Positions 1 through 42,417 of a stretch of DNA of 43,135 nucleotides are shown here, piece by piece. Under the pieces are notes generated by a model. It searched no databases, was not told the origin of the DNA, and saw only the letters and a list, made by a program, of their open reading frames with translations. Within the stretch, counting starts at the first letter, position 1; every line of letters begins with the position of its first letter. Both the position numbers and the translations under genes were made by a program. Origin of the DNA: Octopus bimaculoides (lineage: Eukaryota); assembly GCF_001194135.2 (NCBI RefSeq), contig NC_069007.1, forward strand, positions 20,420,411 to 20,463,545, read 5' to 3'.

Positions 1-520
1 TTACAATTATCGAAGAAGGATTTCCCGCAAATTTCACAGTGAAATGTTTTTTCCCCATTGTGAATTCGTTCATGTCTTTTTAAATCATCATTATTAAAGT
101 AAGATTTCCCACATATTTCGCAGTGGAATTCTTTCTTTCCAATGTGAATTATTTTGTGCCTTGTTAAATTACTGTTTGAGGAGAAATATTTCCCACAAAT
201 ATCACATTGAGAGGGTTTGTCTCCAGTGTGTACCCTTTTATGAGCAACAAGTAAATAATTATTTAAGAAGGACTTGCCACATATTTCACAGTGAAATGGT
301 GTTTCTCCAGTGTGAACTCTCTTGTGACCAACGAGTATAGAATTATTTAAGAATGATCTTCCACAGATTTCACAGGTATAACGCTTTCCTTCGGTGTGTA
401 ATCTTTTGTGGACTCCAAGAGAATATATATTGGCAAATAATTTCCCACATGTTTCACAGTGATGAGATTTTTCCGCACCGTGAGTCCTTTTGTGTTTTGT
501 TAAGAAACTCTTATACGCAT
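1..520 (-). CDS. C2H2 zinc-finger gene Z0, internal fragment (5' part in or beyond gap 521-620, 3' end off the window)
   Basis: Missed by the ORF track. Manual minus-strand translation is open: AYKSFLTKHKRTH-GAEKSHH-CETCGKLFANIYSLGVHKRLH-...[75 protein letters not shown]. Five complete and two partial fingers. Confidence 0.9.
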
Positions 521-1930: not shown

Positions 1931-3275
1931 TAATATACCCAACAATACCATCGAAAAAGCATCGGGACGCGTTTGATATCCGGTAGGTGAGCTTCTTATG
2001 TTAACTTAGGCCACTTGTAAGGACGTGAAGTCGCGAACCAGTCTTTAAATTTTGTTCATCCAATGATCAGAGCATCCACACACAAACTATTGAAACTCCT
2101 GTAACTAATCGTTATCTACACCATTCTGAAAAGTATTTATAGAAAATTTGATTTTAAAAAATAACCATTTTTCTTTCAGTTATGAGAAAACAAAGTCACC
2201 AAACAACTGAGCAATCAGTATAGTTGGACCACTGTTTATTTTTCTTATCAAATTTATTTCTACGAAAAGTAGCGACGTCTAGAAGTTAATGATTTGGAAT
2301 TACTGTGAGTTAATCTCAGAATACGGCAGATTGTCTATGCTGGGGGCCCAATCAATTCTTGCATAAGCAGATGGTAAAATCTTGGTCGCTAATATTAAAA
2401 TTACTAGCCAAAGAGACAGACTCTCCGGACTCCAACTTAACGGTAAACAAACTTTCCAAACGTAATCCGACTATATTAGATCATTTCGTTTATAATGTGT
2501 AAATGGTGGTGAAAAAAAAAAAAATCATAGATTTTCAAAATTCTTTTGTCTTAAAAAGATGCTCCCCCATCATGCGAATTTCTCTCTTTTGGTAAATATC
2601 GCAGTATTTCTGTCTTTCTGACACATCAACTACTTTCATGTGGTGAAATTTTTTTACAAAGCAAGAAATAACTAAATGTTCGCCTAGCAACGTGTAAGGG
2701 AGGTAATTCGTTAAAAATATCGTCTGCTGAAGCTCTTTAATGAAAGAGGATATAATACACTGGCGCACTTGCTAACGGTGAATTCTGTTGTTGTCTCTTC
2801 CTCTGTTTACAGTTTATGGAATTACCTCACACGTTCCTATTTTTCTCTAATCCTTCCCTCATTTTTACATCTCTCCGTTGATATAATACTGAGCTTATGG
2901 AATCCTTATTCAATATGCTGATCCACATACTTGGCTAGTCTAGAAACAGCTTCCAGAGACTGTATGTTCATATTTTCTATCTAAATTAAATGTCCTTTTT
3001 AAGTGATGCCAAACGTTTTACTTTAATCTATAGCTTCTCATAACTTTATCCACAATTACTAACGTAGATATAAGTCTTGTCTACAATATGTGCCGCCTAA
3101 AGATGTCCCAGCCAGCAATAAACATCCTAGGTGTTATATAGAAAATATATCTACATTGCATATTTTCTCCACCTGTAAAGAGAGTCCCATGGTATAAATA
3201 TCATAATCCAAGAGATTGAACCATAATACAATATAACCAGAGACATTAGTTTTGAAGAATTTATCCAGAATTAAT

Positions 3276-4256: not shown

Positions 4257-6329
4257 AATATGTGGAGAAATCATTTGTCTGTCGTAGTAATTAGAACAAA
4301 AACACAATGGAGACAATATTGAAATGATTTGTTTGAAACATTCTCTAGAAATAGAAGCAAAAAGAACAAATTACTGAGAAATTTAAGTAAAAATTTGTGA
4401 TAAAATTTTTACTTTTTTCAGTCACTGAACTGCAACCTTGCTGGAGCCACCACCTTGCAGGGTTTAATCAAACAAATCAGCCCGAACTTATTATATTAGT
4501 CAGTCTTTGCTGAACTGCTAAGTTACATGGATGTAAACAAATTAACACTAGTCAAATAAAGGAGGGTGACAAACACAAAGACACAAATCCCTAAAAGGGA
4601 TGAAAGTGCTAAATGAATACACATTGTTGATTGGTTAAAATTACCCAAATACAACAACTTTAACACAAAATAACTTCTAAAATACAAAATTTTATCTAAA
4701 ATGTTGAAAGTAAACCGTGTTCAGCATGAGAAATTACACCAGTATATGAAGTTTCAAACTGTTTAGTTAAAATAATAAGTAATTAAATAATCTGTGAGTG
4801 AAACTGAAGAGACCCCAAAACCCTTTGTGTTTCAGGCATAAGGAAGGAAGCAGTCTGGGAAATGTCCACTAAGCTTACACCAACATTTGGAGAGTGGCTA
4901 CTAACCTAACGCCAAGGAGTTTGAGTAACAGAATCGGTGTAACTGGACATTTCCTGGACTGCTCTCTTCTGGGGATGAACCTTTGTGCCAGAAATATAAA
5001 GCTTTTTGTAAAACTTTCTTCATTGTTAGAAGATTTCCTTTTCTTTTCCTCCTTCAGAAGTACAATGCTTCAAGCAAACTACAATGTTCTTATTCCATTC
5101 TTCATATTTAATCCTTCTGTTACCATATTTCTGTAGAAATACAGACTTTGTTTTAATTAATTTTGAAAATAAAGGAGAATTTAATGATATACTTTTGTCA
5201 TTATTAAGCTCGTGTTTGGGACATGAATTAATATGAAATTTTGAAGGAAGCTTTTTTTTTTTTTTGTTTTAATTTAAATCACTTTTAAGCTGAAAGTTTG
5301 TATCTTAGAACCAGGAATAGTCTGAACTGGTTTGATGTCAAAAAGGTTTTTATGTAGTTTTGATATTTTTGTCATTTGTTTCACATGCATATATAGAAAT
5401 AGCAACCCAAATGTTTTTAAGTCAGATCCCAATGCTGGATGTTCAAGAACCAAATGAAGGGCAAATTTTCAATGCTGGGATCAACCGGATTCTAAAAAGG
5501 TATAATATGTCTCTGTAGAGCAAACGTAGACTGAGATACAGGGGTCCCAGACAGACAAGATTTTGCTTTTATTAATATAGATATAGAGAAGTATACGGTG
5601 ATATTCATACAGATGTGTTGGACATACCGGGCGTACGATTAAAACAAACTTCACACAAATAATTTTTTAAAATACCAACATGGAGCAAACGAAACGCACT
5701 ATGATATTGAATGTGTTCTCATTCGTTTTTGTCAAATTTATGCAAGTTTAAAGTGTCTTTTGGTGTTTTTGTAATAACCTTTCCGNNNNNNNNNNNNNNN
5801 NNNNNNNNNNNNNNNNNNNNNNNNNNNNNNNNNNNNNNNNNNNNNNNNNNNNNNNNNNNNNNNNNNNNNNNNNNNNNNNNNNNNNNNNNNNNNNNNNNNN
5901 NNNNNNNNNNNNNNNNNNNNNNNNNNNNNNNNNNNNNNNNNNNNNNNNNNNNNNNNNNNNNNNNNNNNNNNNNNNNNNNNNNNNNNNNNNNNNNNNNNNN
6001 NNNNNNNNNNNNNNNNNNNNNNNNNNNNNNNNNNNNNNNNNNNNNNNNNNNNNNNNNNNNNNNNNNNNNNNNNNNNNNNNNNNNNNNNNNNNNNNNNNNN
6101 NNNNNNNNNNNNNNNNNNNNNNNNNNNNNNNNNNNNNNNNNNNNNNNNNNNNNNNNNNNNNNNNNNNNNNNNNNNNNNNNNNNNNNNNNNNNNNNNNNNN
6201 NNNNNNNNNNNNNNNNNNNNNNNNNNGTTTTTCTTTTCACATTCGATATATCCAGCGTTTAATACATATTAAAAAACATTTAATCTGAACGTAAAGAGAG
6301 GTGTGTGTTTTAAAGAAATTACTTTCTCA

Positions 6330-6690
6330 TTTCAGGAAGACCAAGTTAACTTTAGTATTTTCCATTATTGCTATTCCCAATTTGAATCACATCGTTTCCT
6401 GCTATATTTCCTCGCGATATTTATTTTGGTAAATGATGGATCTTTGATTTACCAACGGCTTGAAAACTGTTTCTGTCTGTATTAAATTATGTCAGGGACA
6501 TTTCTGTCACATCACCGGTAGTATCATTGAGGCGAGAGAAAAATCATCAACGGTTGACTCATTATATGTCAGGTAATTTAATTATATTATGTGTAGTAAT
6601 TAACTCAGGAACATTAATGTTTTTAGATAGCTTAAAGCAACCGATATGATGTATCAGACTCGGCGTTCGATCCCCGGGATGATTAAATAT
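6330..6690 (+). promoter_or_regulatory. Conserved 5' module of ZB: AAGTTAACTT motif, TATTAAA, short exon, donor at 6573, intronic hairpin element
   Basis: Same block precedes ZB-ZI, always in gene orientation. CAG|GTAATT donor at 6572/6573; matching acceptor TTTACAG|TTGTG at 7881/7882. Confidence 0.65.
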
Positions 6691-7475: not shown

Positions 7476-8151
7476 GGGTGCATAACTTCCAGAAAAACGG
7501 ATACTTTTTAACGAATTTTTCAACAAATTATCGCTTAGATCCTCTAGATTTAGTGTATGTAAAAAGATTTGTTGGAAAAAAATTGGGTGGGGGAGTTTCG
7601 GTAAATTCACACGTTCCGACATTCCCCCCCCCCTCATACCTTTCTGGAAAATAGGTATTTTTTAATGAAATTTTGGCTATCTTTCGATTTGATGTGAGGA
7701 AATGTCAAGTGAAAGGCACATGGGTTTCTTTACATCTAATCGGCCTGCAGTCTCATGATCACTTGTAACCAAAGAGGTCTTGACCCTTTACTAAGTGTGT
7801 GTGATCAATTGTTATTTATTCAGACTTGATATACTTTGACCAACATTTGTCTTATACAGTCATATTTTTTTTCTTTTACAGTTGTGCTGAATGTTCCATT
7901 ACAAACTGTCATATAAAAATACCAGTTCCACCAGAATATTTGCTACCAGTTATTTATGGATACCCTCTTTCTCTAAGTCTTCAGCCTACATAACTTCTTT
8001 TCACTATATCTGCAATTATTAATGTAGTCTTTTTGTCTACAGTGTGTGTGCCACGTAGAGATGTCCCAGCCAGAAACAAACATTCTGAGTGTTCTGCAGA
8101 AAATAAATCTATGTTGAATATTTTCTCCACCTGTAAACAGTGTCCCATGAG

Positions 8152-8184
8152 ATGGATATCATAAGACAAGAAATTGAACCATAA
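8152..8184 (+). other. Upstream ORF MDIIRQEIEP* (exemplar; homologues before all nine genes with a visible 5' end)
   Basis: ATG GAT ATC ATA AGA CAA GAA ATT GAA CCA TAA, followed by TAG; out of frame with the main ATG and ending 49 nt before it. Confidence 0.55.
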
Positions 8185-8233
8185 TAGATTATATCCACAG
8201 ACATCAGTTTTCAAGAATTCTTCCAGAGCTAAT

Positions 8234-9550
8234 ATGGAGGATGGTAATCACTCAGACACTTCTAACACAAATGTTTCCGATGATACAGATTCTGTTAAAC
8301 AGACATCCAACGTGGGGAAACCATTATCTCATAAAGAAAGGTTGTCAAAGAAAAATATTAATTGTGAAATATGTGGAAAATCTTTTGTGAATTCCAGTAA
8401 TTTAACAAAACACAAAAGATTACACACTGGGGAAAAACCATTTCAGTGTGAGATTTGTGGTAAGTCTTTGAATCAGAAATACCACCTTATTGTCCACAAA
8501 CGTAGCCACACTGGAGAAAAACCCTATCACTGTGATATATGTGGAAAATCATTTGTTGATTATACTTATTTAACAAGTCACAAAAGAATACATACTGGAG
8601 AAAAATCTTTTGTCTGTCAAATATGTGGAAAATCATTTACTCATAATTCTCGCCTTGTTGCCCATGTACGAAGTCACACAGGAGAAAAACCTTTCCACTG
8701 TGAAATATGTGGAAAATCCTTTGTCAGTAATAGTTCTCTAAGAAGTCACAGCAGAATTCACACTGGAGAGAAACCATATCAGTGCGTTATATGTGGCAAA
8801 TCATTTATTAGTAATAGCGCTTTAAAGATTCACAGAAGAATTCACACTGGGGAGAGACCTTATTGCTGTGATATATGTGAAAAATCTTTTGTCAATAGCA
8901 GTTGTCTAACAATTCACAAAAGAATTCACACCGGAGAAAAGCCTTATCACTGTGAAATATGTGGGAAAGCCTTCATTAACAGCTCAAAACTTGTTATCCA
9001 CGTGCACAGTCACACTGGAGAAAAGCCTCACCGCTGTGAAATATGTGGAAAATCATTTATTAGGAATTCCCGTCTTCTACTTCACAAAAGGGTACACACT
9101 GGAGAGAAGCCTTATTATTGCGAGATATGTGGAAAATCGTTTATTAATAACTCACATCTCATTGGTCACAGAAGAATACATACAGGAGAAAAACCATTCC
9201 CTTGTGAAATTTGTGGGAAATCTTTCTATTCTGGCAGTAATTTAAGAAGACACAATATAATACACACTGAGAAAAAAGAATTCCACTGCGAAATATGTGG
9301 AAAATCTTACTTTAATAATTGTGATTTAAAAAGACACAAAAGAATTCATGATGGAGAAAAAACATTTCACTGTGAAATTTGTGGGAAATCTTTCTTCGAT
9401 AATTGTAATCTTATAGTCCATGTCCGTAGTCACACTGGAGAAAGGCCTTGTTCCTGTGAAATATGTGGTAAATCATTTATTTGTAAAAGTCACTTGAATA
9501 GCCACGTTCGAACACACAGTAAAGAAAAACCTTTGAATTGTGATTCATGA
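8234..9550 (+). CDS. C2H2 zinc-finger protein ZB, 14 fingers
   Basis: ORF 8174..9550; ATG of MEDGN at 8234; 14 tandem fingers; ends SKEKPLNCDS. Confidence 0.95.
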   Translation: MEDGNHSDTSNTNVSDDTDSVKQTSNVGKPLSHKERLSKKNINCEICGKSFVNSSNLTKHKRLHTGEKPFQCEICGKSLNQKYHLIVHKRSHTGEKPYHCDICGKSFVDYTYLTSHKRIHTGEKSFVCQICGKSFTHNSRLVAHVRSHTGEKPFHCEICGKSFVSNSSLRSHSRIHTGEKPYQCVICGKSFISNSALKIHRRIHTGERPYCCDICEKSFVNSSCLTIHKRIHTGEKPYHCEICGKAFINSSKLVIHVHSHTGEKPHRCEICGKSFIRNSRLLLHKRVHTGEKPYYCEICGKSFINNSHLIGHRRIHTGEKPFPCEICGKSFYSGSNLRRHNIIHTEKKEFHCEICGKSYFNNCDLKRHKRIHDGEKTFHCEICGKSFFDNCNLIVHVRSHTGERPCSCEICGKSFICKSHLNSHVRTHSKEKPLNCDS

Positions 9551-10149
9551 GAAATGCATTCTTTGTAACTCTTTGTAACTTACTTTCTTTAGTCTACTGA
9601 CTTGTATTCACCGAAGATTTATCATTGTGAATTCTAGAAGGCTGGAGATTATCTCAGCTAACAACAAACAAGATCAGGACAAATATCTGCTAAATGTAAA
9701 TAATGATTTATTTATAAGAGTATAAATAAAATGCATAAATGAATAAACAAATCAATTAATTGTTGTTANNNNNNNNNNNNNNNNNNNNNNNNNNNNNNNN
9801 NNNNNNNNNNNNNNNNNNNNNNNNNNNNNNNNNNNNNNNNNNNNNNNNNNNNNNNNNNNNNNNNNNNNNNNNNNNNNNNNNNNNNNNNNNNNNNNNNNNN
9901 NNNNNNNNNNNNNNNNNNNNNNNNNNNNNNNNNNNNNNNNNNNNNNNNNNNNNNNNNNNNNNNNNNNNNNNNNNNNNNNNNNNNNNNNNNNNNNNNNNNN
10001 NNNNNNNNNNNNNNNNNNNNNNNNNNNNNNNNNNNNNNNNNNNNNNNNNNNNNNNNNNNNNNNNNNNNNNNNNNNNNNNNNNNNNNNNNNNNNNNNNNNN
10101 NNNNNNNNNNNNNNNNNNNNNNNTTTTTGGAGTTCCTTTAAAATTTGAA

Positions 10150-10163
10150 TGGAATATATATAT

Positions 10164-10226
<63 letters not shown>

Positions 10227-10240
10227 TATATATATATCAG
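10150..10240. repeat. (TA)n/(CA)n microsatellite; similar tracts at 10580-10660, 14510-14660, 18440-18470, 19825-19855, 26119-26148, 31825-31870 and poly-A 38426-38460
   Basis: Direct inspection. Confidence 0.9.
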
Positions 10241-10610
10241 CTGAAACATTGTGTTAACAACAAACAAGATCAGGACAAATATCTGCTAAATGTAAATAAT
10301 GATTTATTTATAAGAGTATAAATAAAATGCATAAATGAATAAACAAATCAATTAATTGTTGTTATAGTATATATCAAAATACAGGTGAGGATATAAACCT
10401 TGGAGGGATAGAGATATCCAAGATTAGACTGGTTAAATTCCTAACAATATAGGAACATATATATATATTATTATTATAAATACCAAGTGATGAATTGAAA
10501 CAAATGTAGGTCTGGTCTTGTCAATGTATTAATAAACTTTTATTAATCTTATCTCCATCTTCTCTCTTGGTTTTTATAATATCAATAATATATATGTATA
10601 TATATATATG

Positions 10611-11439: not shown

Positions 11440-11745
11440 ATTTGAGGCAAGCCAAGATAACTTTAGCATTTTCCGTTATTGCTATTCCCAGTTTAAATCA
11501 CATTGCTTCTTGCTTATATTTCCTCGTGATATTTATTTTGTTAAGCGATCGATCTTAGATTTACGAACGGTTTGAAAACTGTTTCTGCCTGTATTAAATT
11601 ATGTCAGGGACATTTCAGTCACATCACCGGTTGTATCATTGAGGCGAGAGAAAAATCATCAACGGTCAACTTATTAAATGTCAGGTAATTTAATTATATT
11701 ATGTGTAGTAATTAACTCAGGAACACTTATGCTTTTAGATAGCTT
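11440..11745 (+). promoter_or_regulatory. Conserved 5' module of ZC (intronic hairpin element deleted)
   Basis: TATTAAA 11592; donor 11684/11685; acceptor 12494/12495. Confidence 0.6.
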
Positions 11746-12782
11746 CAGACGTGTGATCTCCCGGTCCGTGGATCATAATTAAGATTGGGGGCCGCTTTTT
11801 TACAGGACAGCTGAAATGTGTTTTAATCAACAACTAACGAGTAATTAATTAACTTTGCTTGATTCTTTTTCACTTTTAATGACATTTAAATTTAAAGCCC
11901 ATATTATCTGTATTGCTGGATCTTGTTAAATTTCTTTCAAATTACCTGAGGTTTTTCGAATTTCCACGAGAGTATTTTCAAAACATGTTCTGATGTAGTT
12001 TTCGATGCTGATAGCGAAAATTGCATCAATTTTTTTTTTTACTCGGATTAATCTAAAAAAAAACCTTACAAATATTTAAAATAATATAGTTTTAACTAAT
12101 CGCAATATATATTGCTGGACATACCAGGAAACGTGACTGTCCCCATAGAACAGCATACACGACGTCTTTACACGACCACTCGACCATATTTCGCGTTACT
12201 CCAGTTCACTCAGCTGTAGAAATGATTTGCGATATCACTGGTGCCAAGCTGCATTGACTTTTGCTTTCCCTTGGATAACATCGGTGGCGTGTGGAGGAGA
12301 GACTGGTATGTGTGGGCAACTGTTGATCCGTAAACAACCTTGCCTTGACTTTAGGTGCAATCTCATGGTCACTTGTGACCAAGGTGGGGTCTTGACCCTT
12401 TACTATGTGTGTGTGAACAATTGTTATTTATTCAGACTTGATATACTTTGACCAACATTTGTCTTATACAGTCATATATTTTTCTCCTTTTCAGTTGTGC
12501 TGAATGTTCCATTACAAACTGTCATATGAAAATACCAGTTCCACCAGAATATTTGCTACCAGTTATTTATGGATGCCCTTTTTCTTCAGCCTACATAACT
12601 TCTTTTCACTATATCTGCAATTATTAATGTAGTCTTTTTGTCTACAGTATGTGTGCCACATGTTGCATATTTTCTCCACCTGTAAACAAAGTCCCATGGG
12701 ATGGATATCGTAAGACAAGAAATTGAACCGTAATAGATTATATCCACAGACATCAGTTTTCATGAATTCCACTGGTGTTGAT

Positions 12783-15229: not shown

Positions 15230-15593
15230 TCATTTCAGGAAAACCAAGTTAACTTTAGTATTTTCCATTATTGCTATTCCCAATTTGAATCACATCGTTT
15301 CCTGCTATATTTCCTCGCGATATTTATTTTGGTAAATGATGGATCTTTGATTTACCAACGGCTTGAAAACTGTTTCTGTCTGTATTAAATTATGTCAGGG
15401 ACATTTCTGTCACATCACCGGTAGTATCATTGAGGCGAGAGAAAAATCATCAACGGTCGACTCATTATATGTCAGGTAATTTAATTATATTCTGTGTAGT
15501 AATTAACTCAGGAACATTAATCTTTTTAGATAACATAAAGCAACCGATATGATGTATCAGACTCGGCGTTCGATTCCCGGGATGATTAAATAT
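15230..15593 (+). promoter_or_regulatory. Conserved 5' module of ZD
   Basis: AAGTTAACTT 15246; TATTAAA 15383; donor 15475/15476; acceptor 16459/16460. Confidence 0.65.
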
Positions 15594-16811
15594 GTCTCCA
15601 ATTAAAGTATTTTATTATTCTCCTTATTGTGTCTTCTTAGATGTGTGATCTCCCGGTGCATGGATCATAATTAAGATTATATTAATTTTTGGAGCCAAAT
15701 GAGTGTTTTAAGGATCGTGAGTTTGAGGTAAGTTTACATCTGCAGAGATTGACTTTAAATGTTATTAGTACACTTAACAAGCTGAAAACATTGGGCCTGC
15801 CTTAAGCAAGGAAATAAACAGTGTAGGGACACAAAGCATCATCTTTTACATTTTTTTTTCTTAGACTTCTTGGAAGATATCGCTGCTATTTTTAGACCTC
15901 AAGGAAGATTTAGCTGCTATTTCTAGCAGGTCGACAGACTGCGTAAATGTTTCAATGCGGCTGTTCCCACTGGCAGAAGCAGTCATGACTTTCGGTGTGT
16001 TTGGCATTATAAGCTGCCAATTAGTTAAAATTAGGAAATTTTAAATGCTTGTAACTTTTTTTAAAGAATTTTTAAAAAGGGAATAAAATAGAGTGCCTTG
16101 ATCAAGAACACAAAACACACAGGTCTATGTATTGTGTTCTTGAGCAACACACCTTATTTCACGTTACTCCAGTTCACTCAGCTGTAGAAATGATTTGCGA
16201 TGTCACTGGTGCCAAGCTGTATCGGCCCCTTTGCTTTTCCCTTGGATAACATCAGTGGTGTGTAGAGGAGAGACTGGTATGCGTGGGCAAATGTTGGTCT
16301 TCCATAAACAACCTTGCCTGGACTTATATCTCGGACGGTAACTTGTAACCAAGGTGGGGTCTTGACCCTTTACTATGTGTGAACAATTGTTATTTATTCA
16401 GACTTGATATACTTTGACCAACATTTGTCTTATACAGTCATATATCTTTTCCTTTACAGTTGTGCTGAATGTTCCATTACAAACTGTCATATGAAAATAC
16501 CAATTCCACCAGAATATTTGCTACCAGTTATTTATGGATACCCTCTTTCTCTAAGTCTTCAGCCTACATAACTTCTTTTCACTATATCTGCAATTATTAA
16601 TGTAGTCTTTTTGTCTACAGTATATCTGCCACGTGGAGATGTCCCAGCCAGCAACAAACATTCTAAGTGTCCTGCAGAAAATAAATCTATGTTGCATATT
16701 TTCTCCTCCTGTAAGCTGTGTCCCATGAGATGGATATCATAAGACAAGAAATTGAACCGTAATAGATAATATCCACAGACATCAGTTTTCAAGAATTTCT
16801 CCAGAGTTAAT

Positions 16812-18044
16812 ATGGAGGATGGTAATCTCTCAGACACTTCTAACACAAATGCTTCCAATGATACAAATTCTGTTAAACAGACATCCAACGTGGGGAAACC
16901 ATTATCTCATAAAGAAGGGTTGTCAAAGAAAAATATTAATTGTGAAATATGTGGAAAATCTTTTGCGAATTCCAGTAATTTAACAAAACACAAACGATTA
17001 CACACTGGGGAAAAACCATTTCAGTGTGAGATTTGTGGAAAGGCATTCAATCAGAAATACCAACTTATTGTCCACAAACGTAGCCACACTGGAGAAAAAC
17101 CCTATCACTGTGATATATGTGGAAAATCATTTGTTGATTCCACTAATTTAACAAGTCACAAACGAACACATACTGGAGAAAAATCTTTTGTCTGTCAAAT
17201 ATGTGGAAAATCATATACGCATAATTCTCGCCTTGTTGACCATGTACGAAGTCACACAGGAGAAAAGCCTTTCCACTGTGAAATATGTGGAAAATCGTTT
17301 GTCAGTAATAGTGCTTTAAGCAGTCACAACAAAATCCACACTGGAGAGAAACCATATCAGTGCGTTATATGTGGAAAATCATTTATTAATAATAGTGCCT
17401 TAAAAATTCACAAAAGAATTCACACTGGAGAGAGACCTTATTGCTGTGATATATGTGGAAAATCTTATCTCCATAATGATTGTTTAACAAATCATAAAAG
17501 AATTCACACTGGAGAAAAACCTCATCACTGTGAAATATGTGGAAAATCATTTATTAGGAATTCTTGTCTTCTAGTTCACAAAAGAGTACACACTGGAGAG
17601 AAGCCTTATTATTGTGAAACATGTGGAAAATCGTTTATTAATGTCTCAAATCTCATTTTTCACAGAAGAATACATACTGGAGAAAAGCCATTCCCTTGTG
17701 AAATTTGTGGGAAATCTTTCCGTTCTGGTAGTAATTTAAGAAGACACAATATAATACACAGTGAGAAAAAAGAATTCCACTGTGAAATTTGTGGGAAATC
17801 TTACTTTAATAATTGTGATTTAAAAAGACACAAAAGAATTCATGATGAAGAAAAAACATTTCACTGTGAAATTTGTGGGAAATCTTTCTTCAATAATTGT
17901 CATCTTATAGTCCATGTTCGTAGCCACACTGGAGAAAGGCCTTGTTCCTGTGAAATATGTGGTAAATCATTTATTTGTAAAAGTCACTTGAATACCCACA
18001 TTCGAACACACAGGAAAGGAAAACCTTTGAATTGTGATTCATGA
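16812..18044 (+). CDS. C2H2 zinc-finger protein ZD, 13 fingers
   Basis: Intact ORF from MEDGN; 13 fingers; ends RKGKPLNCDS. Confidence 0.95.
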   Translation: MEDGNLSDTSNTNASNDTNSVKQTSNVGKPLSHKEGLSKKNINCEICGKSFANSSNLTKHKRLHTGEKPFQCEICGKAFNQKYQLIVHKRSHTGEKPYHCDICGKSFVDSTNLTSHKRTHTGEKSFVCQICGKSYTHNSRLVDHVRSHTGEKPFHCEICGKSFVSNSALSSHNKIHTGEKPYQCVICGKSFINNSALKIHKRIHTGERPYCCDICGKSYLHNDCLTNHKRIHTGEKPHHCEICGKSFIRNSCLLVHKRVHTGEKPYYCETCGKSFINVSNLIFHRRIHTGEKPFPCEICGKSFRSGSNLRRHNIIHSEKKEFHCEICGKSYFNNCDLKRHKRIHDEEKTFHCEICGKSFFNNCHLIVHVRSHTGERPCSCEICGKSFICKSHLNTHIRTHRKGKPLNCDS

Positions 18045-19439
18045 GAAATGCATTCTTTGTAACTCTTAGTCTACTGACTTGTATTCACCGAAGATTTATC
18101 ATTGTGAATTATGTTGGAATTGTTTCTCTTTGAGATCTTGTATTGCAGTTTAAAATGTATTTTGATATGCGAGAAACTCTTTTACAAACACAGTTGGGAA
18201 TTATAAACTTGTGTATGAAAAGATACGGAGGAAGTAAAAGTGTTATTCTAAATATGTAAACCTGGTATTTTCTGTTTTACTTTTCTTGTCCACCAATGCA
18301 TCCTGGAAAAAAGAAATCATTTCTTCAGTTCTTTTGAAGTTGGCGTGAATTGGAAGTATTGATGTGCACGTTTTTGTGTGAGAGAGGGAGAGTGTGTGTG
18401 TGTAGGTGTGTGAGGCAGAATGTGAAGTGCATTTGTTAGTGTGAAGAGAGAGAGAGAGAGAGAGAGAGAGTAATGTTGCTGGTGTGTGTGAGAGAGAAAG
18501 ATAACTGAATTTTTTTATTCACTTTTTGTAGTGAGGGATCTTTTTGGTTTGACGGGCAACATTTTTTTATGTAGTGTTTTTGGTACCGAAACACTTTCAA
18601 ACTTCGTATACTTGTATATTTTGTGGTATAGAACAGATAAAAGATTTTGTATTCGAAGTTATTTCACGTTAANNNNNNNNNNNNNNNNNNNNNNNNNNNN
18701 NNNNNNNNNNNNNNNNNNNNNNNNNNNNNNNNNNNNNNNNNNNNNNNNNNNNNNNNNNNNNNNNNNNNNNNNNNNNNNNNNNNNNNNNNNNNNNNNNNNN
18801 NNNNNNNNNNNNNNNNNNNNNNNNNNNNNNNNNNNNNNNNNNNNNNNNNNNNNNNNNNNNNNNNNNNNNNNNNNNNNNNNNNNNNNNNNNNNNNNNNNNN
18901 NNNNNNNNNNNNNNNNNNNNNNNNNNNNNNNNNNNNNNNNNNNNNNNNNNNNNNNNNNNNNNNNNNNNNNNNNNNNNNNNNNNNNNNNNNNNNNNNNNNN
19001 NNNNNNNNNNNNNNNNNNNNNNNNNNNNNNNNNNNNNNNNNNNNNNNNNNNNNNNNNNNNNNNNNNNNATAGCAACCGAAATGTTTTTAAATCAGATCCC
19101 AATACTGGATGGTTTTCGTTGCTATTTCTAGCAGTTCTACAACGATGTAACCGGTTAGATACCTTTTTGTATTTCTCACTGGTGCTTTACCTGCTAGGAA
19201 TAGCAACCGAAATGTTTTTAAATCAGATCCCAATACTGGATGGTTTTCGTTGCTATTTCTAGCAGTTCTACAACGATGTAACCGCTTGTTAATTATAAGC
19301 ACACACACACTTAAGACTAAATAAATTTTAGAATATAGTTCATAAATATGATAAAGAAGTTCTCGTATAGAGCCGTCACTTTGTATAAGAACTCTATTCA
19401 CATTTTCTGATGATGCGACGTTATATAGCGATAGATCTT

Positions 19440-19685
19440 AGATTTACCAACGGCTTGAAAACTGTTTCTGCCTGTATTAAATTATGTCAGGGACATTTCA
19501 GTCACATCACCGGTAGTATCATTGAGGCGAGAGAAAACTCATCAACGGTCGACTTATTAAATGTCAGGTAATTTAATTATATTATGTGTAGTAATTAACT
19601 CAGGAACATTAATGTTTTTAGATAGCTTAAAGCAACCGATATGATGTATCAAACTCGGCGTTCGATCCCCGAGATGATTAAATAT
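19440..19685 (+). promoter_or_regulatory. Conserved 5' module of ZE (upstream palindrome segment missing)
   Basis: TATTAAA 19475; donor 19567/19568; acceptor 20533/20534. Confidence 0.62.
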
Positions 19686-19857: not shown

Positions 19858-20928
19858 ATATTGCTGCTGTGTGTGTGTGAGAGAGAGAGATAAGTGAAAT
19901 GTTTTATTCACTTTTTGTAGTGAGTGATTGACAGAGAAAGAGAGAGAGAGAAACAGGTTATGTATGTATGGCTTCAGTGAAACACGCACGCAGTTTATGT
20001 ATGTATGCATGTATGTATGAATGTTTAAAATTATAATTTAGGGTATCTAAGAGACACCACCACGCTGAAAATAGCAGTCAAAACTTGACTCTAAAACCAC
20101 AATAAATGTTCATATAGCACCAGGAGAGAAGACAAAGAGACAAAATAAACTAGCAAAAATTACTGGATAATTCCAGATCCCGGATTTCTGGTTTTGCATA
20201 AGAAATGCTTTGCCTCATCAGTGGAATATACACAGAAAACCTTTTCTGTGTATATTCCATTGATGAGGCAAAACCCTTTGCTTTCCCTTGGATAACATCT
20301 GTTGTGTGTAGAGGTGAGACTGGTATGCACGGGTGGCTGTTTGTCTTCCATAAACAACCTTGCCTGGACTTATATCTCGGAGGGTAACTTTCTAAGTGCA
20401 GTCTCATGGTCACTTGTAACCAAAGAGGTCTTTACACTTTACTAAGTGTGTGTGAACAATTGTTATTTATTCAGACTTGATATACTTTGACCAACATTTG
20501 TCTTATACAGTCATATATTTTTCTCCTTTTCAGTTGTGCTGAAGGTTCCATTACAAACTGTCATATGAAAATACCAATTCCACCAGAATATTTGCTACCA
20601 GTTATTTATGGATACCCTTTTTCTCTNNNNNNNNNNNNNNNNNNNNNNNNNNNNNNNNNNNNNNNNNNNNNNNNNNNNNNNNNNNNNNNNNNNNNNNNNN
20701 NNNNNNNNNNNNNNNNNNNNNNNNNNNNNNNNNNNNNNNNNNNNNNNNNNNNNNNNNNNNNNNNNNNNNNNNNNNNNNNNNTAAGTGTCCTGCAGAAATA
20801 AATCTATGTTGCATATTTTCTCCTCCTGTAAACAAAGTCCATTGAGATGGATATCATAAGACAAGAAATTGAACCGTAATAGATTATATCCACAGACATC
20901 AGTTTTCATGAATTCCACTGGTGTTGAT

Positions 20929-24644: not shown

Positions 24645-25056
24645 TACTCGTTTCAGAAATGCTAAGTTAATTTTTTTGTATTCGTCATTTTCACATGTTC
24701 CCACTTTGAATTTTCCCTGTTTTCTCTATATTTACCAGCAATATTTATTTAAACGACGATAACTATTTGGTTGAATAATGTATTTTTGATTTATACCATA
24801 GACAGGATATAGATCAAAGAATAAGGGTGTTACCGACTGTATTAAATTATGTTAGGGACATTTAATTTATATCACCGGTAGTATCATTCAAACGACAGAA
24901 AAATCAATAACAACCCGGCCAACAGAGTATATTTCAGGTAATTTAATTATATTATGTGTAGTAATTAAGGTGAACGTTGATGTTTATAAATAGCAACTTA
25001 AAGCGACCGATTTGATGTATCGAAGTCGGTGTTCCATCACCTGGATGATTAAATAT
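24645..25056 (+). promoter_or_regulatory. Conserved 5' module of ZF (diverged)
   Basis: TCGTTTCAGAAATGCTAAGTTAATTT near 24650; TATTAAATTATGTTAGGGACATTT 24840; donor 24937/24938; acceptor 26034/26035. Confidence 0.62.
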
Positions 25057-26152: not shown

Positions 26153-26479
26153 TCTTGCAGTTTACAGCCTTCACAACTCCCATTAACTCTATCCACAATA
26201 ATTAACATAGGGTGCTACTTTGGTATGCGATTTGCCAAATAATTGGCTGTGTAGATCACATACCAAAGTGGTACCTAACATAGATATAAAAGTCGTTCTG
26301 TCTACAGTATGGGTACCACTTGGAAATGTCTCAACCAGCAACAAATACTCTAAGTGTTGTGTAGAAAATATATCTGCATTGCATATTTCCTACATGTGTA
26401 AACAGAGTTCCATGAGATGGATATCATAAGACAGGAAATTGAACCATAATAGACTATATCCACAGACATCAGTTTTAAT

Positions 26480-27619
26480 ATGGAGAACGGTAATCTGTCA
26501 GACATTTCTAACAAAACTGTTTCTGACAATATAGATTCAGTTAAACAGACATCCGGTAGTGAGAAACCACTGTCTCATAAACGAAGTTCATTACAGAAAA
26601 ATATTCATTGTGAAATTTGTGGGAAATTATATACTTACAAGTCTCAACTTATTGTCCATAAACGTAGTCACACTGGAGAAAAGCCATCTCACTGTGACAC
26701 CTGTGGAAAATCGTTTGTGAATAATAGTTCACTGACGAATCACAAAAAAATTCACAATGGAGAAAAGCAATACCACTTTGAAATATATGGGAACTCAGTT
26801 GTCAACAATGGTTATTTAAGAATCCATAAAAGAAAACACTTTGACAAAAAACTGTTTCACTGTGAAATATGTAGAAAATCTTTCATGAACATTGCTAAAC
26901 TTGTTACTCATAGACGTCTTCACAGTGGAGAAGAAACGTACTGCTGTGACATATGTGGAAAATCATTCATTAGCAATTCTCGTTTTGTAGGTCACCAACG
27001 AAAACACACGGGAGAAAACCCCTTTCACTGCAAAATCTGTGGTAAATATTTCATTAATAATTCCCATCTTGTTGCTCACAAAACAGTACACACTGGAGAA
27101 AAACCATTCCACTGTGAAATATGTGGGAAATATTTCTCCTGTAGGAGTAATTTAAGAAGGCACAATATAATACACACTGGGAAAAAAGAATTCAAATGTG
27201 AGATATGTGGGAATTCTTTTTTTTATAAATCACTTCTTGTTGGTCATGAAAAAGTGCATACTGGAGACAAACCCTCTCATTGTGATATATGTGGGAAATA
27301 TTTCTATTCTAGCAGTAATTTAAGAAGACACAAAATAATACACACTGAGAAAAAAGAATTCCACTGTGAAATATGTGGGAAATCTTATTTTAATAATTGT
27401 GACTTAAAAAGACATAAAAGAATTCATAATGGTGAAAAAACATTTCACTGTGAAATTTGTGGGAAATCCTTCTTCGATAATTCTAACCTTATTGTTCACA
27501 TCCGTAGTCACACTGGAGAAAGGCCCTATCATTGTGACGTATGTGATAAATCATTTATCTGTAAAAGTCATTTGAATTGTCACAAACGAACACACACCAC
27601 AAAGACAATATCATTGTGA
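26480..27619 (+). CDS. C2H2 zinc-finger protein ZF, 12 finger units (unit 3 degenerate)
   Basis: Intact ORF starting MENGN; the third unit reads FEIYG in place of CEICG. Confidence 0.93.
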
Positions 27620-31163: not shown

Positions 31164-31837
31164 ATTAACTCTTAAGAAATCTCTCAAAACCGATGCCTGT
31201 GGTTATAATCTATTATGGTTCAGTTTCTTGTCTTATGATGTCCAAACATGGGACTCTGTTTACATGTGTAGGAAATATGCAATGCAGAAATACTTTCTAC
31301 ATAACACTTGCAATGTTTGTTGCTGGCTGGGACATCTCCAAGTGGCACACATATTGCATACAAAAAGACTTGCAGATCTACATTAATATTTATGGATAGA
31401 GTTAAGAGAAGTTATGTACACTACAAACATATAAGGATCCAGAAACTATTGGTAGCAGGTATTCTAGTGGAATCAGAATTCTTGTACGACAGGTTGTAAA
31501 GCAACATTCAGCATAACTGTAAAGGAAGAAAATATATGACTGTTATATAATTGTTGTTGGGAGGGAAATGTGAGAGAGTATTAGAATAGTATTAGAATAG
31601 CTGTCCATTCAAAGTTTTATACTTAAAGCGAATGGACAGAGAGAGACAAAATGTAAAATATATAGAAATTTTAGGAAATAAAAATAATTTCAGAATTGCG
31701 ATTGTTGTCTGAATCAATGGATGAGTACAAGAAGAAAAAAATGCTCAAAGTAAGAAGAGAAAGGAGACACTGGAGGTTCAGATATTCGAAGACTCTACTG
31801 GGTATGTCTATGTACACACGCAAAATATGTGTGTGTG

Positions 31838-31874
<37 letters not shown>

Positions 31875-33315
31875 TTGTTTAAAAGATTTCCAACACTGTC
31901 TGTTTTCTATGTTTTATTTATATTCCTGCAGAACCAATGTGGGGTATAGAATATGGAATATACAATATATAATATAAAATAAAAATGGATGGCACCATGA
32001 AATAAAGTATTGAATGTAGATGAAATATTGAGTGTTCAATATAAAGGATCAAATATATAAATATATAAATATAAATATATAAAGGCGACTCGAGTTTCAG
32101 GGCTATTTCCCNNNNNNNNNNNNNNNNNNNNNNNNNNNNNNNNNNNNNNNNNNNNNNNNNNNNNNNNNNNNNNNNNNNNNNNNNNNNNNNNNNNNNNNNN
32201 NNNNNNNNNNNNNNNNNNNNNNNNNNNNNNNNNNNNNNNNNNNNNNNNNNNNNNNNNNNNNNNNNNNNNNNNNNNNNNNNNNNNNNNNNNNNNNNNNNNN
32301 NNNNNNNNNNNNNNNNNNNNNNNNNNNNNNNNNNNNNNNNNNNNNNNNNNNNNNNNNNNNNNNNNNNNNNNNNNNNNNNNNNNNNNNNNNNNNNNNNNNN
32401 NNNNNNNNNNNNNNNNNNNNNNNNNNNNNNNNNNNNNNNNNNNNNNNNNNNNNNNNNNNNNNNNNNNNNNNNNNNNNNNNNNNNNNNNNNNNNNNNNNNN
32501 NNNNNNNNNNNNNNNNNNNNNNNNNNNNNNNNNNNNNNNNNNNNNNNNNNNNNNNNNNNNNNNNNNNNNNNNNNNNNNNNNNNNNNNNNNNNNNNNNNNN
32601 NNNNNNNNNNNNNNNNNNNNNNNNNNNNNNNNNNNNNNNNNNNNNNNNNNNNNNNNNNNNNNNNNNNNNNNNNNNNNNNNNNNNNNNNNNNNNNNNNNNN
32701 NNNNNNNNNNNNNNNNNNNNNNNNNNNNNNNNNNNNNNNNNNNNNNNNNNNNNNNNNNNNNNNNNNNNNNNNNNNNNNNNNNNNNNNNNNNNNNNNNNNN
32801 NNNNNNNNNNNNNNNNNNNNNNNNNNNNNNNNNNNNNNNNNNNNNNNNNNNNNNNNNNNNNNNNNNNNNNNAAGGGTACTACTAAAGCAGAGTGGTCCCG
32901 AACGCGCAGTCGCGCGTCCGCGCTAGCTAGTCGTGAGTGGTCGATCCTATTATTTTTAAACTTCAAACTTCATTTGTTTTCTATTTTGATAAATTCTCTC
33001 TGTTGAAAATTATATTTTTATATTTTAAATAATTTGCAATTTCATGAAATATGTTTTTATATTAAATTTGCGTTTTCTAATTTGATAAATTCTACGGACA
33101 CAAACAGAGGTGAACGAGTGAGAGAGAGAGATAGTGAGATAGACAGACAGTAGCCAAAGAATCAACTCAAACCAGCAGTAACGTTCCTTGTCAGTTCTAC
33201 TTTCAATTCTGACAGTGCCGAAAATTATTATTTGATGATTAAAATATATTTTAACCATCCCCTAATGTAAGGAACAACCAATTAACGATGTAGCGTAATT
33301 TATAATGGAAATAAA

Positions 33316-33710
33316 AATATTTGATCATCCAAGTGACGGAACAACGACCTCGATACATCATATCAGTCGCTTTAAGTTACCTATATTATAAGTCGCTTTA
33401 AGTTACCTATATTATAAGTAAATTACCTGTAATTATTACTAAGTGTCACTGATAATTTTTCTCTCGCCGCAATTATGATAACGGTCATGCAAGTTAAATG
33501 TCTCTAACATAATTTAATACAGTGAGAAACACCATTTCAACTATATCAATTTATTCTTTCATTTATATCCAGTCTATGGTATAAATAAATATACATCAAC
33601 CAGCAAAATGATTAGTGTGGTTTAAATAAACTTCGTGGATAAATGTGGCAGAAAACATTAAAATTCAAAGTGAGAAGTTTGGCAAATTTAAGAAGTTAAC
33701 TGGCAATCTT
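33316..33710 (-). promoter_or_regulatory. Conserved 5' module of ZG
   Basis: Reverse-complement copy: TATTAAA 33519-33513; donor CAG|GTAATT at 33427/33426; acceptor at 31517/31516; 26-bp tandem duplication at 33365-33416. Confidence 0.6.
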
Positions 33711-34144: not shown

Positions 34145-34576
34145 TACCTATTCGTTTCAGAAAAGCAAAGTTAACTTTTAACATTCACGATTATTGCTGT
34201 TCCCTATTTAAATTACAATTTCCCCCATGTTTTATATGCAATAATTAATTAGTTGAGTGATTGTGATTGTATATTTAGTTTATACTATAGACTGGATGTA
34301 AATGAAAACACTAATTGATATAACTGTAGGACGTTTCTAACTAAGCGTATTAAATTATGTTAGGGACATTTAAGTTATGTCACCGGTAGTTTCATTCAGA
34401 CGAAAGAAGAATTACCAAATTCTTAATGATCCTGACCAACTTCTTATATTTCAGGTAATTTATATTATGTGAAGTAACTAACTCATGTTATAGTGAACTT
34501 TAATGTTTATAGATAACTTCAAGTGACTGATATGCTGTATCGAAGTCGCTATTCGATCACCTGGAGGATAGAATAT
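34145..34576 (+). promoter_or_regulatory. Conserved 5' module of ZH
   Basis: AAAGTTAACTTT 34167; TATTAAA 34348; donor 34454/34455; acceptor 35552/35553. Confidence 0.62.
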
Positions 34577-35282: not shown

Positions 35283-35912
35283 AGGTGTGCCATGCATCAG
35301 GTGTGAAAGTGATTGCAGAACAATAAGAGATGAAGTGTTTTGTTCAAAAACGCAACACACTACCTGGTCTAGGAATTGAAATCACAATTGCTAGATCGTG
35401 AGTGCAAGATCCTAACCACTAGGCCATGTGCCCTATATAAATATAACATACACACACGTATCTATAACATATATATATAGCATACACACATCTACACACC
35501 TGTTTTTTTGTCTCCAACAGGTGTTTTACATATATATTTTCTTCCTTTACAGTTGTGCTGAATGTTCCATTACAACCTGTCACACAAAAATACCAATTCC
35601 ACCAGAACACCTGCTACCAGTCATTTATGGATGCTCTCTCTCTCTCTATGCTTGTAGCCTACGTGACATCTACTAACTATATCCACAATTATTAATGTAG
35701 GAAGAAGTCTTTATGGTTACAATATGTGTACCACTTGGAGATGTCCCAGCCAGTAACAGGTATTCTAGTGTTACATAGAAAAGATATCTACATTGCATAT
35801 TTTCTACACAAGTAAACAGAGTCCCATGATTTGGACATCATAAGACAAGAAACTGAACCATAATAGATTATAACCACAGGCATCAGTTTTCAAGAATTCC
35901 TCCAGAGTTAAT

Positions 35913-37299
35913 ATGGAGGATGGTAATCACTCAGACACTTCTAACACAAATGTTTCTGACAATATAGATTCTGTTAAACAGACATCTGATGGAGAGAGAT
36001 CATTACTGTGTGAAACATTTACGAAACGGAAATCATTACAGAGAAATATTAATTGTGAAATATGTGGGAAATCTTTTGTTAACAGAAGTAATTTATCAAA
36101 ACACAAAAGATTACACACTGGAAAAAAACCATTTCATTGTGAAATTTGTGGGAAATCTTTTAATCAGAAAACTCATCTTGTTAATCATATACGTAATCAC
36201 ACTGGAGAAAAACCTTACCATTGTGAAATATGTGGAAAATCATTTGTTGATAATAGTTATTTAACGAGCCATAAAAGAATGCACACTGGGGAAAACTCAT
36301 TNNNNNNNNNNTGTTGATAATAGTTATTTAACGAGCCATAAAAGAATGCACACTGGGGAAAACTCATTAGACTGTGAGATATGTGGGAAATCTTTTCCTT
36401 ATAACTCTCGCCTTGTTATCCATATGCGTAGTCACACGGGAGAGAAACCATTCCACTGTGAAATATGCGGAAAATCATTTGTCGACAATAGTTATTTAAC
36501 GAGTCACGTAAGGATTCACACTGGAGAAAAACGCTATCATTGCGAAGTATGTGGAAAGTCTTTTATCAAGAATTCCAGTCTTGTCACTCACATACGAAGT
36601 CACACTGGAGAAAAGCCTTATTCTTGTGATTTATGTGGCAAATCATTTGTCAATAATAGTTATTTGACAATTCACAAAAGGAAACACATGGGGGAAAGTT
36701 TGTTTCATTGTGAAACATGTGGGAAATCTTTCCCAAATAACTTGAAATTTGTTACCCACATGCGTATTCACACTGGAGAAAAACCTTACCACTGTGAAAT
36801 ATGTGGTAAGTCGTTCATTAAAAATTCTCGTCTTGTCATTCACCAGAGAATACACACGGGAGAAAAGCCATATAATTGTGAAATATGTGGGAAATCTTTT
36901 ATTAATAATTCTCGTCTCGTTACTCACAAACGAGTACACACTGGAGAGAAACCCTACCACTGTGACACATGTGGGAAATCTTTCTTCTCTAGCAGTAATT
37001 TAAAAAGACACAAATTACAACACATTGGTGAAAGGGCCTTCCATTGTGAAACATGTGGGAAATCCTACTTCAATAATAGTGATTTAAAAAGACACAAAAG
37101 GGAACATGGTGGAGAAAAAACATTCCACTGCGAAATCTGTGGCAAATCCTTCTTCGATAATTCTAATCTTATAGTTCACATCAGGAGTCACACTGGAGAG
37201 AGGCCCTATCATTGTGACGTCTGTGAGAAATCATTTATCTGTAAAAGTGACTTGAATAAACATAAACGGAGACACACCGGTGAGAAACCTAGTAACTGA
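35913..37299 (+). CDS. C2H2 zinc-finger protein ZH, probably 14 fingers, split by an assembly gap
   Basis: ORFs 35913..36317 and 36346..37299 are separated by 10 N, flanked by an identical 57-bp sequence (36245-36301 = 36312-36368). Collapsing the overlap gives one ORF. Confidence 0.88.
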
Positions 37300-41487: not shown

Positions 41488-42417
41488 ATTAACTCTGGAG
41501 AAGTTCTAACGTCTGTGGTTATAATCTATTATAGTTCAGTTTCTTCTTTTATGAAAAGCATGGGACTTTGTCTACAGGTGGAAAAGATATGCAATGTAGA
41601 TATATCGGTCTTTGCCTTTCCCTTGGATAACATCGGTGGCTGGTTTGCATGAAGATATTCTGGTGGAATCAGTATTTTTGTGTCATACGTTGTACTGGAA
41701 CATTCAGCATAACTGTAAAGAGAGGAAATATACGACTGTAAAAGATAGAGGTTGGAGGGAACGAATGAGTTTGATGCATTTAAAAACTTAATCTAGTATT
41801 TAGTAGAAATGCCTTGTACAGTTTTTTTAACGACTTATACCATTCGAGCACTGTGCTTATAAACTGTGTCTCCGCAGATAAAACGATGTTATGAGAGCTG
41901 TCGATTTAGTTTCGAGATGTCTGTGTAAACATAGTATAAAAGTTTACAATGTTAATATGAACAATAAGTACTTTAGATTCAAATAACCCCTAAAATGCCA
42001 AGAAAGCTAAATGCCTGTTAGTTGATGATTAACCCTCATGAGACACCCGGGCCGACTGATTGGCCCAAGTGATAGATACATGCTGAAAGGACTTTCAGGC
42101 CGATCCATCCACCCGATGAAACAAACGTTTCGAAGTGTAATAACCAATTAGAGATCGTCTTTAAGTAGATATAATATAAAATTATACAACATCTATAGTC
42201 TTAAATAGAAATTGAAGAGTTTTATTGCATTTTATACATTATTTTTTACGTGCACCCATCAGTTTCAGTTTCAACAGAGAACATATTTTGGTCTCTTTGG
42301 CTACCAAAATACCGTGCGTCTCCAAAGTGTCTTTTAAAAACATTTCCGTTGTCTGGTAGAGCGAGTAACAAGCAATTGACGATGTAACATAGTTTATTAT
42401 GAAAATAAAATAATAAA

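Follow-up and report, generated by a model that had tools for sequence, protein, structure and literature searches.

A 10-codon upstream reading frame in an Octopus bimaculoides zinc-finger gene cluster and the duplicated leader that carries it

In a cluster of C2H2 zinc-finger genes of Octopus bimaculoides, a short element that reads in several copies as a 10-codon upstream open reading frame (uORF), MDIIRQEIEP*, lies shortly before the main open reading frame (ORF) of each of nine tandem paralogs (ZA to ZI). The cluster, which also includes a partial tenth gene, fills a 43-kb window of CM046627.1 (GCA_001194135.2); this window is the whole stretch of DNA that was analyzed, and all coordinates refer to it unless another sequence is named. 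A first-pass annotation had proposed that the mini-ORF is a translational brake or re-initiation switch shared by the entire family. Judged by the sequences, their lineage structure, the substitution pattern and the annotated starts of the coding sequences (CDSs), the ORF as a start-to-stop unit does not look maintained by selection across the family. The reading we favor, to which we give about even credence, is that the mini-ORF is incidental to an inherited, AT-rich, non-coding leader, and that a mild constraint at the nucleotide level, probably on leader or splicing signals, acts on the surrounding block.

The mini-ORF across nine paralogs

The positions and readings that the first-pass annotation gave for the nine copies were all correct when checked against the sequence. 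The canonical frame ATGGATATC...CCRTAA is found in ZB, ZC, ZD, ZE and ZF. In ZB it occupies 8152..8184 on the plus strand (ATG GAT ATC ATA AGA CAA GAA ATT GAA CCA TAA, MDIIRQEIEP*), with a strong Kozak context and 49 nucleotides (nt) before the main ATG. The ZC copy (12701..12733, plus strand) reads MDIVRQEIEP*, and those of ZD (16730..16762, plus), ZE (20847..20879, plus) and ZF (26417..26449, plus) again read MDIIRQEIEP*; the start context is strong in all five (G at -3, G at +4). The remaining four copies have no ATG at this position. In ZG (31213..31245, minus) the element begins TTG GAC with its nucleotides otherwise kept, and the upstream CCCATG opens another frame of nine codons, MFGHHKTRN*. 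ZH (35831..35863, plus) also begins with TTG, its upstream CCCATG giving MIWTS*, and ZA (3194..3226, plus) begins ATA AAT, its upstream CCCATG giving only MV*. In ZI (41529..41561, minus), a 5-nt deletion joins CCCATG to the frame to produce MLFIKEETEL*. TAATAG at the stop and CCATG at the 5′ side are each confirmed in eight of nine copies, the exceptions being ZA (TAATAC after the last codon) and ZE (CCATTG, the CCATG being gone), as are the synonymous variants GAT/GAC, CAA/CAG, GAA/GAG and CCA/CCG. Between the mini-ORF stop and the main ATG lie 49 nt in seven copies; deletions of 19 nt and 8 nt shorten this interval to 30 nt in ZF and 41 nt in ZI, respectively, and in every copy the in-frame TAA ends before the main ATG without overlap. 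Relative to the main ATG, which lies 82 nt away, the mini-ORF is read in the +1 frame, and all three frames are closed upstream; an N-terminal extension is therefore excluded, as had been argued earlier, and the 19-nt deletion in ZF and the 8-nt deletion in ZI would break any such frame. Searched for as a repeat, the motif gave seven matches where none was expected in shuffled sequence, an excess that arises because there are nine paralogous gene units, and from nothing more.

A neighbor-joining tree and an identity matrix, both built over the leader and the first 300 nt of CDS, place ZB, ZC, ZD and ZE in one young clade (93-96% identical), while ZF, ZG, ZH, ZI and ZA show 63-81% identity to that clade and among themselves. 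The canonical ATG, present in five of nine copies, corresponds to only two of about six independent lineages (the ZB-ZE clade and ZF), because four of the five ATG copies are nearly the same sequence by recent descent. The description of the uORF as family-wide was thus overstated, since it tallied copies and not lineages. Where the ATG is missing it appears as ATA in ZA and as TTG in ZG and ZH (both with GAC and ACT), and it has been removed in ZI. The downstream nucleotides nonetheless stay conserved in these ATG-less copies and in a relative from O. sinensis (see below). The main ORF is intact and multi-fingered in both ZA and ZG, and ZG is annotated, so the upstream ATG is dispensable for the gene; the ZH main ORF is broken solely by a 10-N assembly gap.

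The mini-ORF also has company. Each leader contains 6-10 upstream ATGs (uATGs) against 3-6 expected from base composition, with no sign of uATG depletion, and three of them, at ZB positions 7891 (8/9 copies), 8147 (8/9) and 8061 (7/9), are kept in more copies than the one at 8152. The flagged ORF is distinguished only by its strong context and by being the last uATG in the leader, and because many other uATGs lie upstream it is not the first that scanning ribosomes would meet. A second mini-ORF at ZB 8061-8117, starting GAGATGTCCCAGCC (MSQPATNILSV...), occurs in all seven copies that retain the region; its stop position is the same in ZA, ZF and ZG, and it looks as ‘conserved’ as the flagged ORF.

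Substitution pattern and extent of conservation

Substitutions were counted as Fitch parsimony steps per site on the neighbor-joining tree of the nine copies. Third codon positions of the fingers and the intron-like sequence 5′ of the leader each accumulated ~1.5 steps per site, compared with 0.84 for the whole leader and 0.65 for the block 8105-8204. Within this block, the uORF ATG changed at 1.0 steps per site plus one deletion, the other nine uORF codons at 0.67, TAATAG at 0.17 and positions 8188-8204 at 0.53, with 0.53-0.74 in the flanks of the mini-ORF. Within the mini-ORF element the start codon changes fastest, and when the block is divided into 15-nt bins, conservation is lowest around the ORF start. 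Steps in the mini-ORF were spread over the three codon positions as 7/6/8, with no third-position excess, whereas the finger CDS in the same alignment gave the expected codon pattern (0.61/0.86/1.51). Eleven distinct substitutions comprised 4 synonymous and 7 non-synonymous changes (expected synonymous fraction 0.19, P = 0.14). Amino-acid-level purifying selection on the mini-ORF was not detected by codon position or by synonymous excess, in tests of low power. With these values the codons evolve essentially neutrally, an outcome that the first-pass annotation itself had set against its proposal.

The conservation that does exist is neither co-extensive with the mini-ORF nor confined to it, whether measured in 33-nt windows or in 15-nt bins. 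The mini-ORF falls at the 20-29th percentile for conservation among 33-nt leader windows, and the top-conserved 33-mer, 8168-8200, takes in its last five codons, the stop and 16 nt beyond, ending in an invariant CACAG. The conservation peak is thereby offset from the mini-ORF by 16 nt in the downstream direction and extends beyond the stop codon. In ZB the conserved and nearly indel-free block (8105..8204, plus strand) contains a pyrimidine tract with AG at 8120-8140, a purine-rich stretch, TTGAACCATAATAG and CACAG at 8196-8200. Set against the rest of the leader, the conservation of this ~100-nt block was only marginally special (permutation scan statistic, P = 0.06-0.10). An RNA structure in the block was considered and dropped, as the consensus fold had no covarying pair and the single-sequence fold scored z = 0.05 against shuffles.

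A relative of the leader in O. sinensis

Among the loci checked around five distant zinc-finger proteins from O. sinensis and O. vulgaris (L001-L006), a leader-like block was found in L001 and L002 only, two near-identical loci on CM016885.1 that provide the single leader relative. Their exon-1-like and leader-like blocks align with the copies of the window at 70-76% identity (E ~1e-7 to 1e-10). The leader-like block (15958-16109 in L001/L002 coordinates) is flanked by ATG|GTAAGT and CTACAG| and lies 1.45 kb 5′ of a zinc-finger ORF (17561-18427) that belongs to another subfamily. TAAGACAAGAAACTGAACCATAG and CTACAG|ACATT are retained in this block; it has no ATG, and aligning it with the window copies requires a gap in the 5′ part of the ORF. 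As the block is kept without the ATG, its nucleotides are conserved where the ORF is not; as it is bracketed by donor-like and acceptor-like signals, it could also be the 3′ end of a short intron. The annotated 135-amino-acid (aa) product at this locus looks like a chimeric model across two zinc-finger units.

Other searches returned little. A search with the full ZB protein was swamped by vertebrate zinc-finger proteins, an N-terminal profile search gave no relatives with this N-terminus, and a C-terminal query recovered only distant zinc-finger proteins of O. sinensis and O. vulgaris. Exact-product look-ups for ZB, ZD, ZA and both forms of ZC returned no record, those for ZG and ZE returned the genome assembly only and no transcript contigs, and the core motif had no match in a metagenome scan. 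In the text of a cephalopod C2H2 study (PMC12513265), the words ‘exon’, ‘UTR’, ‘intron’ and ‘promoter’ occur nowhere.

Putative structure of the duplicated gene unit

A 25-nt box, GTATTAAATTATGTYAGRGACATTT, lies 1-2 kb upstream of eight of the nine genes, in gene orientation (6479-6503, 11591-11615, 15382-15406, 19474-19498, 24839-24863, 33496-33520 on the minus strand, 34347-34371, and 42619-42643 on the minus strand). It carries no mismatch in the eight genes (two variable positions) in surroundings that have diverged by 20-30%, is far better conserved than the flagged mini-ORF, and is probably a shared promoter or first-exon element. A diverged version of the box is also seen at ~15530-15560 of O. 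sinensis L001. About 66 nt past the box stands a conserved donor-like sequence, CAG|GTAATTTAATTATATTATGTG (6570-6593, 11682-11705, 15473-15496, 19565-19588, 24935-24958, and 42523-42546 on the minus strand), which probably marks the end of a short non-coding exon 1. A pattern search with CAG|GTAATTTAATT found six of the eight sites, the ZG and ZH versions being diverged.

Closer to the genes, a signal resembling a 3′ splice site, in which a T-rich tract is followed by ACAG|TTGTGCTGAATGTTCC... (7861..7910, plus strand), coincides with the start of the alignable leader in 8/9 copies and probably represents the start of the 5′ leader of the coding exon. The T-tract-ACAG|TTGTGCTGAATG lies ~350 nt before the start codon, at the point where homology among the paralogs begins; in ZB it is at 7875-7910, and its paralogous sites are at 12488, 16453, 20527, 26028, 31523 (minus), 35546 and 41719 (minus), with TTTACAG|TTTATGGAAT as the ZA analogue. 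The box, the donor-like signal and the acceptor-like signal are common to all copies but ZA. Directly 3′ of the acceptor-like signal is the slowest-evolving stretch of the leader, CTGAATGTTCCATTACAAMCTGTC (0.25-0.42 steps per site), the conservation of which equals anything near the mini-ORF.

Splice-like signals were scored with a position weight matrix (PWM), a crude one built from our own approximate frequencies. Mean scores were +5.4 bits for the acceptor at 7881 (8/8 copies) and 8.9 bits for the exon-1 donor, compared with -7.9 bits for the CACAG at 8200, where the AG at 8199-8200 is present in 9/9 copies behind a poor pyrimidine tract. Within the leader, CCT|GTAAAC at 8133 provides the sole donor-like GT that is conserved; it averaged 3.0 bits, and a PWM scan of the copies revealed no good conserved donor inside the leader. 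On balance, these splice-like signals speak for a leader that stays in the mature mRNA, though they are no proof of it.

Put together as the favored reading, the unit would begin ~1-2 kb upstream with the conserved box and a short non-coding exon 1 ending CAG|GTAATT, followed by one intron whose strong 3′ splice site lies ~350 nt 5′ of the start codon. The last exon, from ~7882, would then carry the AT-rich leader into a single coding exon starting AAT-ATG-GAG-GAT-GG. The 10-codon frame would be one of the 6-10 AUG mini-ORFs that arise by chance in such a leader, with copies that resemble one another because they were inherited through duplication. A mild nucleotide-level constraint would act on the ~100-nt block, the core of which (8168-8200) overlaps the last codons and stop only, and most plausibly concerns leader or splicing signals and not a peptide or the ORF. 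If the leader is part of the mRNA, the strong-context AUG of ZB-ZE and ZF would be predicted to capture scanning ribosomes and lower translation of the main ORF, with partial reinitiation 49 nt downstream (30 nt in ZF); such an effect, ordinary for an upstream AUG, would be limited to some copies and would not amount to a switch for the whole family. The earlier interpretation thus holds in part, as regards the exclusion of an N-terminal extension and the possibility of such an effect in some copies. A shared and selected switch does not fit the loss of the ATG in ZA, ZG/ZH, ZI and O. sinensis, the missing codon signature (7/6/8; 4/11 synonymous, P = 0.14), a conservation peak that passes the stop, or a frame that is one of 6-10 uATG mini-ORFs, with 7891, 8061 and 8147 kept in more copies.

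Several points weigh against this reading. The ATG context is optimal in ZB-ZF and the spacing fits reinitiation. The block is nearly free of indels between flanks with indels of 8 to 170 nt, and TAATAG is near-invariant, so that some function is plausible, for which the uORF stop is one candidate. The codon tests are weak in power (~6 lineages, 10 codons), it is uncertain whether the ATG was gained or lost, and both the exon layout and the inclusion of the leader in mRNA are deduced only from conserved splice-like motifs and the crude PWM.

Alternative explanations

The same block could be intronic and untranslated, which we consider unlikely, though the likeliest of the alternatives. A short intron would close at the invariant CACAG (8196-8200) and have the segment as its 3′ end, with a branch site at TTGAAC/CTGAAC (8174-8179), 23 nt upstream, and a donor at CCT|GTAAAC 8133 (giving a 68-nt intron) or further upstream; the TAG at 8185-8187 would be unusable because it is too near the branch site. 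Like known 3′ splice-site regions, the segment has an invariant CAG (8198-8200) and, 23 nt before it, a branch-like YTGAA, and its conservation ends at the AG: the best 33-mer stops exactly at the AG shared by all nine copies and conservation falls right after it. The length of 8133-8200 is near-constant (63-68 nt) against large indels in the flanks, the GT at 8133 is present in 9/9 copies, the O. sinensis block is bracketed by ATG|GTAAGT and CTACAG|ACATT, and the uATGs of the leader are not depleted. Unlike such regions, however, it has a poor pyrimidine tract before the CACAG (-7.9 bits) and no strong conserved partner donor in the leader, the 8133 site scoring 3.0 bits against 8.9 bits for the exon-1 donor. 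The branch-like motif is also imperfect, the position homologous to the O. sinensis GTAAGT is deleted in ZC and ZI, and 320 nt upstream there is a far stronger acceptor. A regulatory uORF that is real and under selection, in which the 10 codons are translated up to TAA(TAG) and inefficient reinitiation 49 nt downstream damps output cluster-wide, appears improbable. The strong Kozak context (G at -3, G at +4) of five copies, the invariant stop position with TAATAG in 8/9, the four synonymous variants, the recovery of a 10-codon frame in ZI through a neighboring ATG and a block without frame-breaking indels all speak for it. Yet the ATG is missing from four of ~6 lineages and from the O. sinensis relative with the downstream nucleotides still kept, substitutions show neither a codon-position signature nor a significant excess of synonymous changes (P = 0.14), the conserved stretch is not co-extensive with the ORF, whose start is the least conserved part of the block, and many uATGs lie 5′ of the mini-ORF. 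Were such a uORF real and family-wide, it would suggest that a fast-expanding family of octopus transcription factors is under common post-transcriptional control of dosage. A narrower version, a clade-specific brake functional only in the youngest, still-duplicating ZB-ZE group and in ZF, with inefficient reinitiation 30-49 nt downstream, seems quite improbable as well. If true, zinc-finger proteins from new duplicates would be held at a lower dosage, ZA, ZG, ZH and ZI would have lost the uORF, and the paralogs would differ in translational control and not in transcription alone.

Two further explanations remove the mini-ORF from translation altogether or make it a relic. In a DNA-level account, which we regard as very improbable, the conserved stretch is a core promoter or transcription-factor site with transcription starting at ~8206, so that the mini-ORF would lie upstream of the transcript. 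Its parts would be a TATA-like TAATAG/TTATAT and an initiator-like CATCAGTT, the TCAGTT of which fits the arthropod-type initiator consensus. TA-rich motifs stand 12-26 nt upstream of TCAGTT, TAATAGATTA is a TAAT-NN-ATTA palindrome, and conservation stops a few nt past the initiator-like motif; but the spacing from TATA-like to initiator-like motif is too short (first T at -24), the latter is altered in ZG (TCGGTT), ZA (TTAGTT) and ZI, and the ZF leader would be 11 nt long. Moreover, ZE is annotated from an ATG at -21, and the upstream box, donor and acceptor already resemble a promoter, exon 1 and intron. Hardly credible, finally, is a fossil of an ancestral exon that would have encoded an N-terminus with an IKQE/IKEE-like motif of the SUMO type and would since have been severed by a stop and a frame shift. 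The peptide does read I-R-Q-E in most copies and I-K-E-E in ZI, similar to psi-K-x-E, but the frame never stays open beyond 15 codons and does not match that of the main ORF, a donor after it is absent in most copies (CCG|GTAATA in ZC-ZE only), no codon signature is seen, and the N-terminal profile search gave no relatives.

Relation to known uORF systems

Short uORFs are common before transcription-factor genes, and reinitiation-type uORFs are known from yeast GCN4 and mammalian ATF4. The octopus mini-ORF resembles ordinary uORFs, those of the reinitiation type included, in being short (10 codons), in ending ~50 nt before the main AUG, in having a strong start context in five copies and in sitting upstream of a transcription-factor gene, a uORF-rich class. 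It differs from them in that the paralogs do not conserve its start codon, and in that it comes last among 6-10 uATGs and is not a member of an ordered uORF series of known regulatory logic. Conserved-peptide uORFs, such as those encoding the AdoMetDC MAGDIS peptide and the fungal arginine attenuator peptide, show amino-acid purifying selection over deep divergence. The similar peptide-like string (MDIIRQEIEP) of several octopus copies is reminiscent of these, but its substitutions are even over codon positions and nucleotide conservation runs past the stop; the similarity results from recent duplication together with that continuing conservation. Of the features of conserved regulatory uORFs that were tested, the mini-ORF has an in-frame stop and lacks a retained AUG, co-extensive conservation and the amino-acid constraint of peptide-dependent uORFs.

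The octopus genome paper reportedly described lineage-specific tandem C2H2 zinc-finger expansions of octopods. The cluster is of this kind, with nine poly-C2H2 paralogs in 43 kb, a single-exon CDS in each and shared flanking non-coding blocks, and the common leader, upstream box and splice-like signals are simply a duplicated gene unit. In tandem arrays like this one, caution is called for, since copies that are identical through recent duplication give a “conserved” appearance to any short ORF of their AT-rich leader. The more useful by-product of the comparison is the putative structure of the unit, comprising the upstream box, a short first exon, an intron, a strong acceptor and the leader.

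Other features of the window

The DNA of the window is eukaryotic, rich in AT and interrupted by many assembly gaps. A 7.2-kb stretch around ZG matches O. bimaculoides CM046627.1 at every base, N runs included, and the look-ups of ZE and ZG consistently place the window at about 20,420,411-20,463,545 of that record. Its intact paralogs encode 9-14 fingers each and consist of tandem C2H2 fingers only; in a Pfam scan, the ZB protein matched zf-C2H2 and zf-H2C2_2 and no other domain. The ZB main ORF (8234..9550, plus strand) encodes 438 aa with 14 C2H2 fingers and has the start context AAT ATG G. The NCBI CDS of ZG is a single exon that uses the same main ATG as called here (MEDGNYSD...), while that of ZE, also a single exon (445 aa), starts 21 nt further 5′, at an ATG in frame with the family start. 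This additional ATG (MNSTGVD-MEDGN...) is present in the sequences of ZC (12762-12764) and ZE (20908-20910). ZF (26480-27619) retains an open, annotated frame of 379 aa in which several fingers are without zinc ligands (e.g., HFEIYGNSV); with these losses and its 19-nt leader deletion, the gene may be decaying. The tenth zinc-finger gene (1-503, minus strand) is partial, running off the start of the window, and its 5′ side is cut by a gap at 521-620; the leader motif was not found at this gap-interrupted 5′ side. Within the conserved upstream block of ZB, GGCGTTCGATCCCCGGGA at 6662-6679 is tRNA B-box-like and may be a SINE (short interspersed nuclear element) remnant; looking for a known RNA family or a tRNA/SINE remnant gave no Rfam and no ARAGORN match in the window.

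Runs of N at 5786-6226, 9769-10123, 18673-19068, 20627-20781, 32112-32871, 36302-36311 and 40415-40615 interrupt ZH, ZI and the ZE leader. The long ORFs called at 5711-6262, 9752-10267, 18531-19262, 32103-32966 and 40246-40704 are artefacts of N runs and were discarded. The gap at 9769-10123 is flanked by a perfect 110-nt direct repeat (9659-9768 = 10255-10364), which looks like an assembly artefact.

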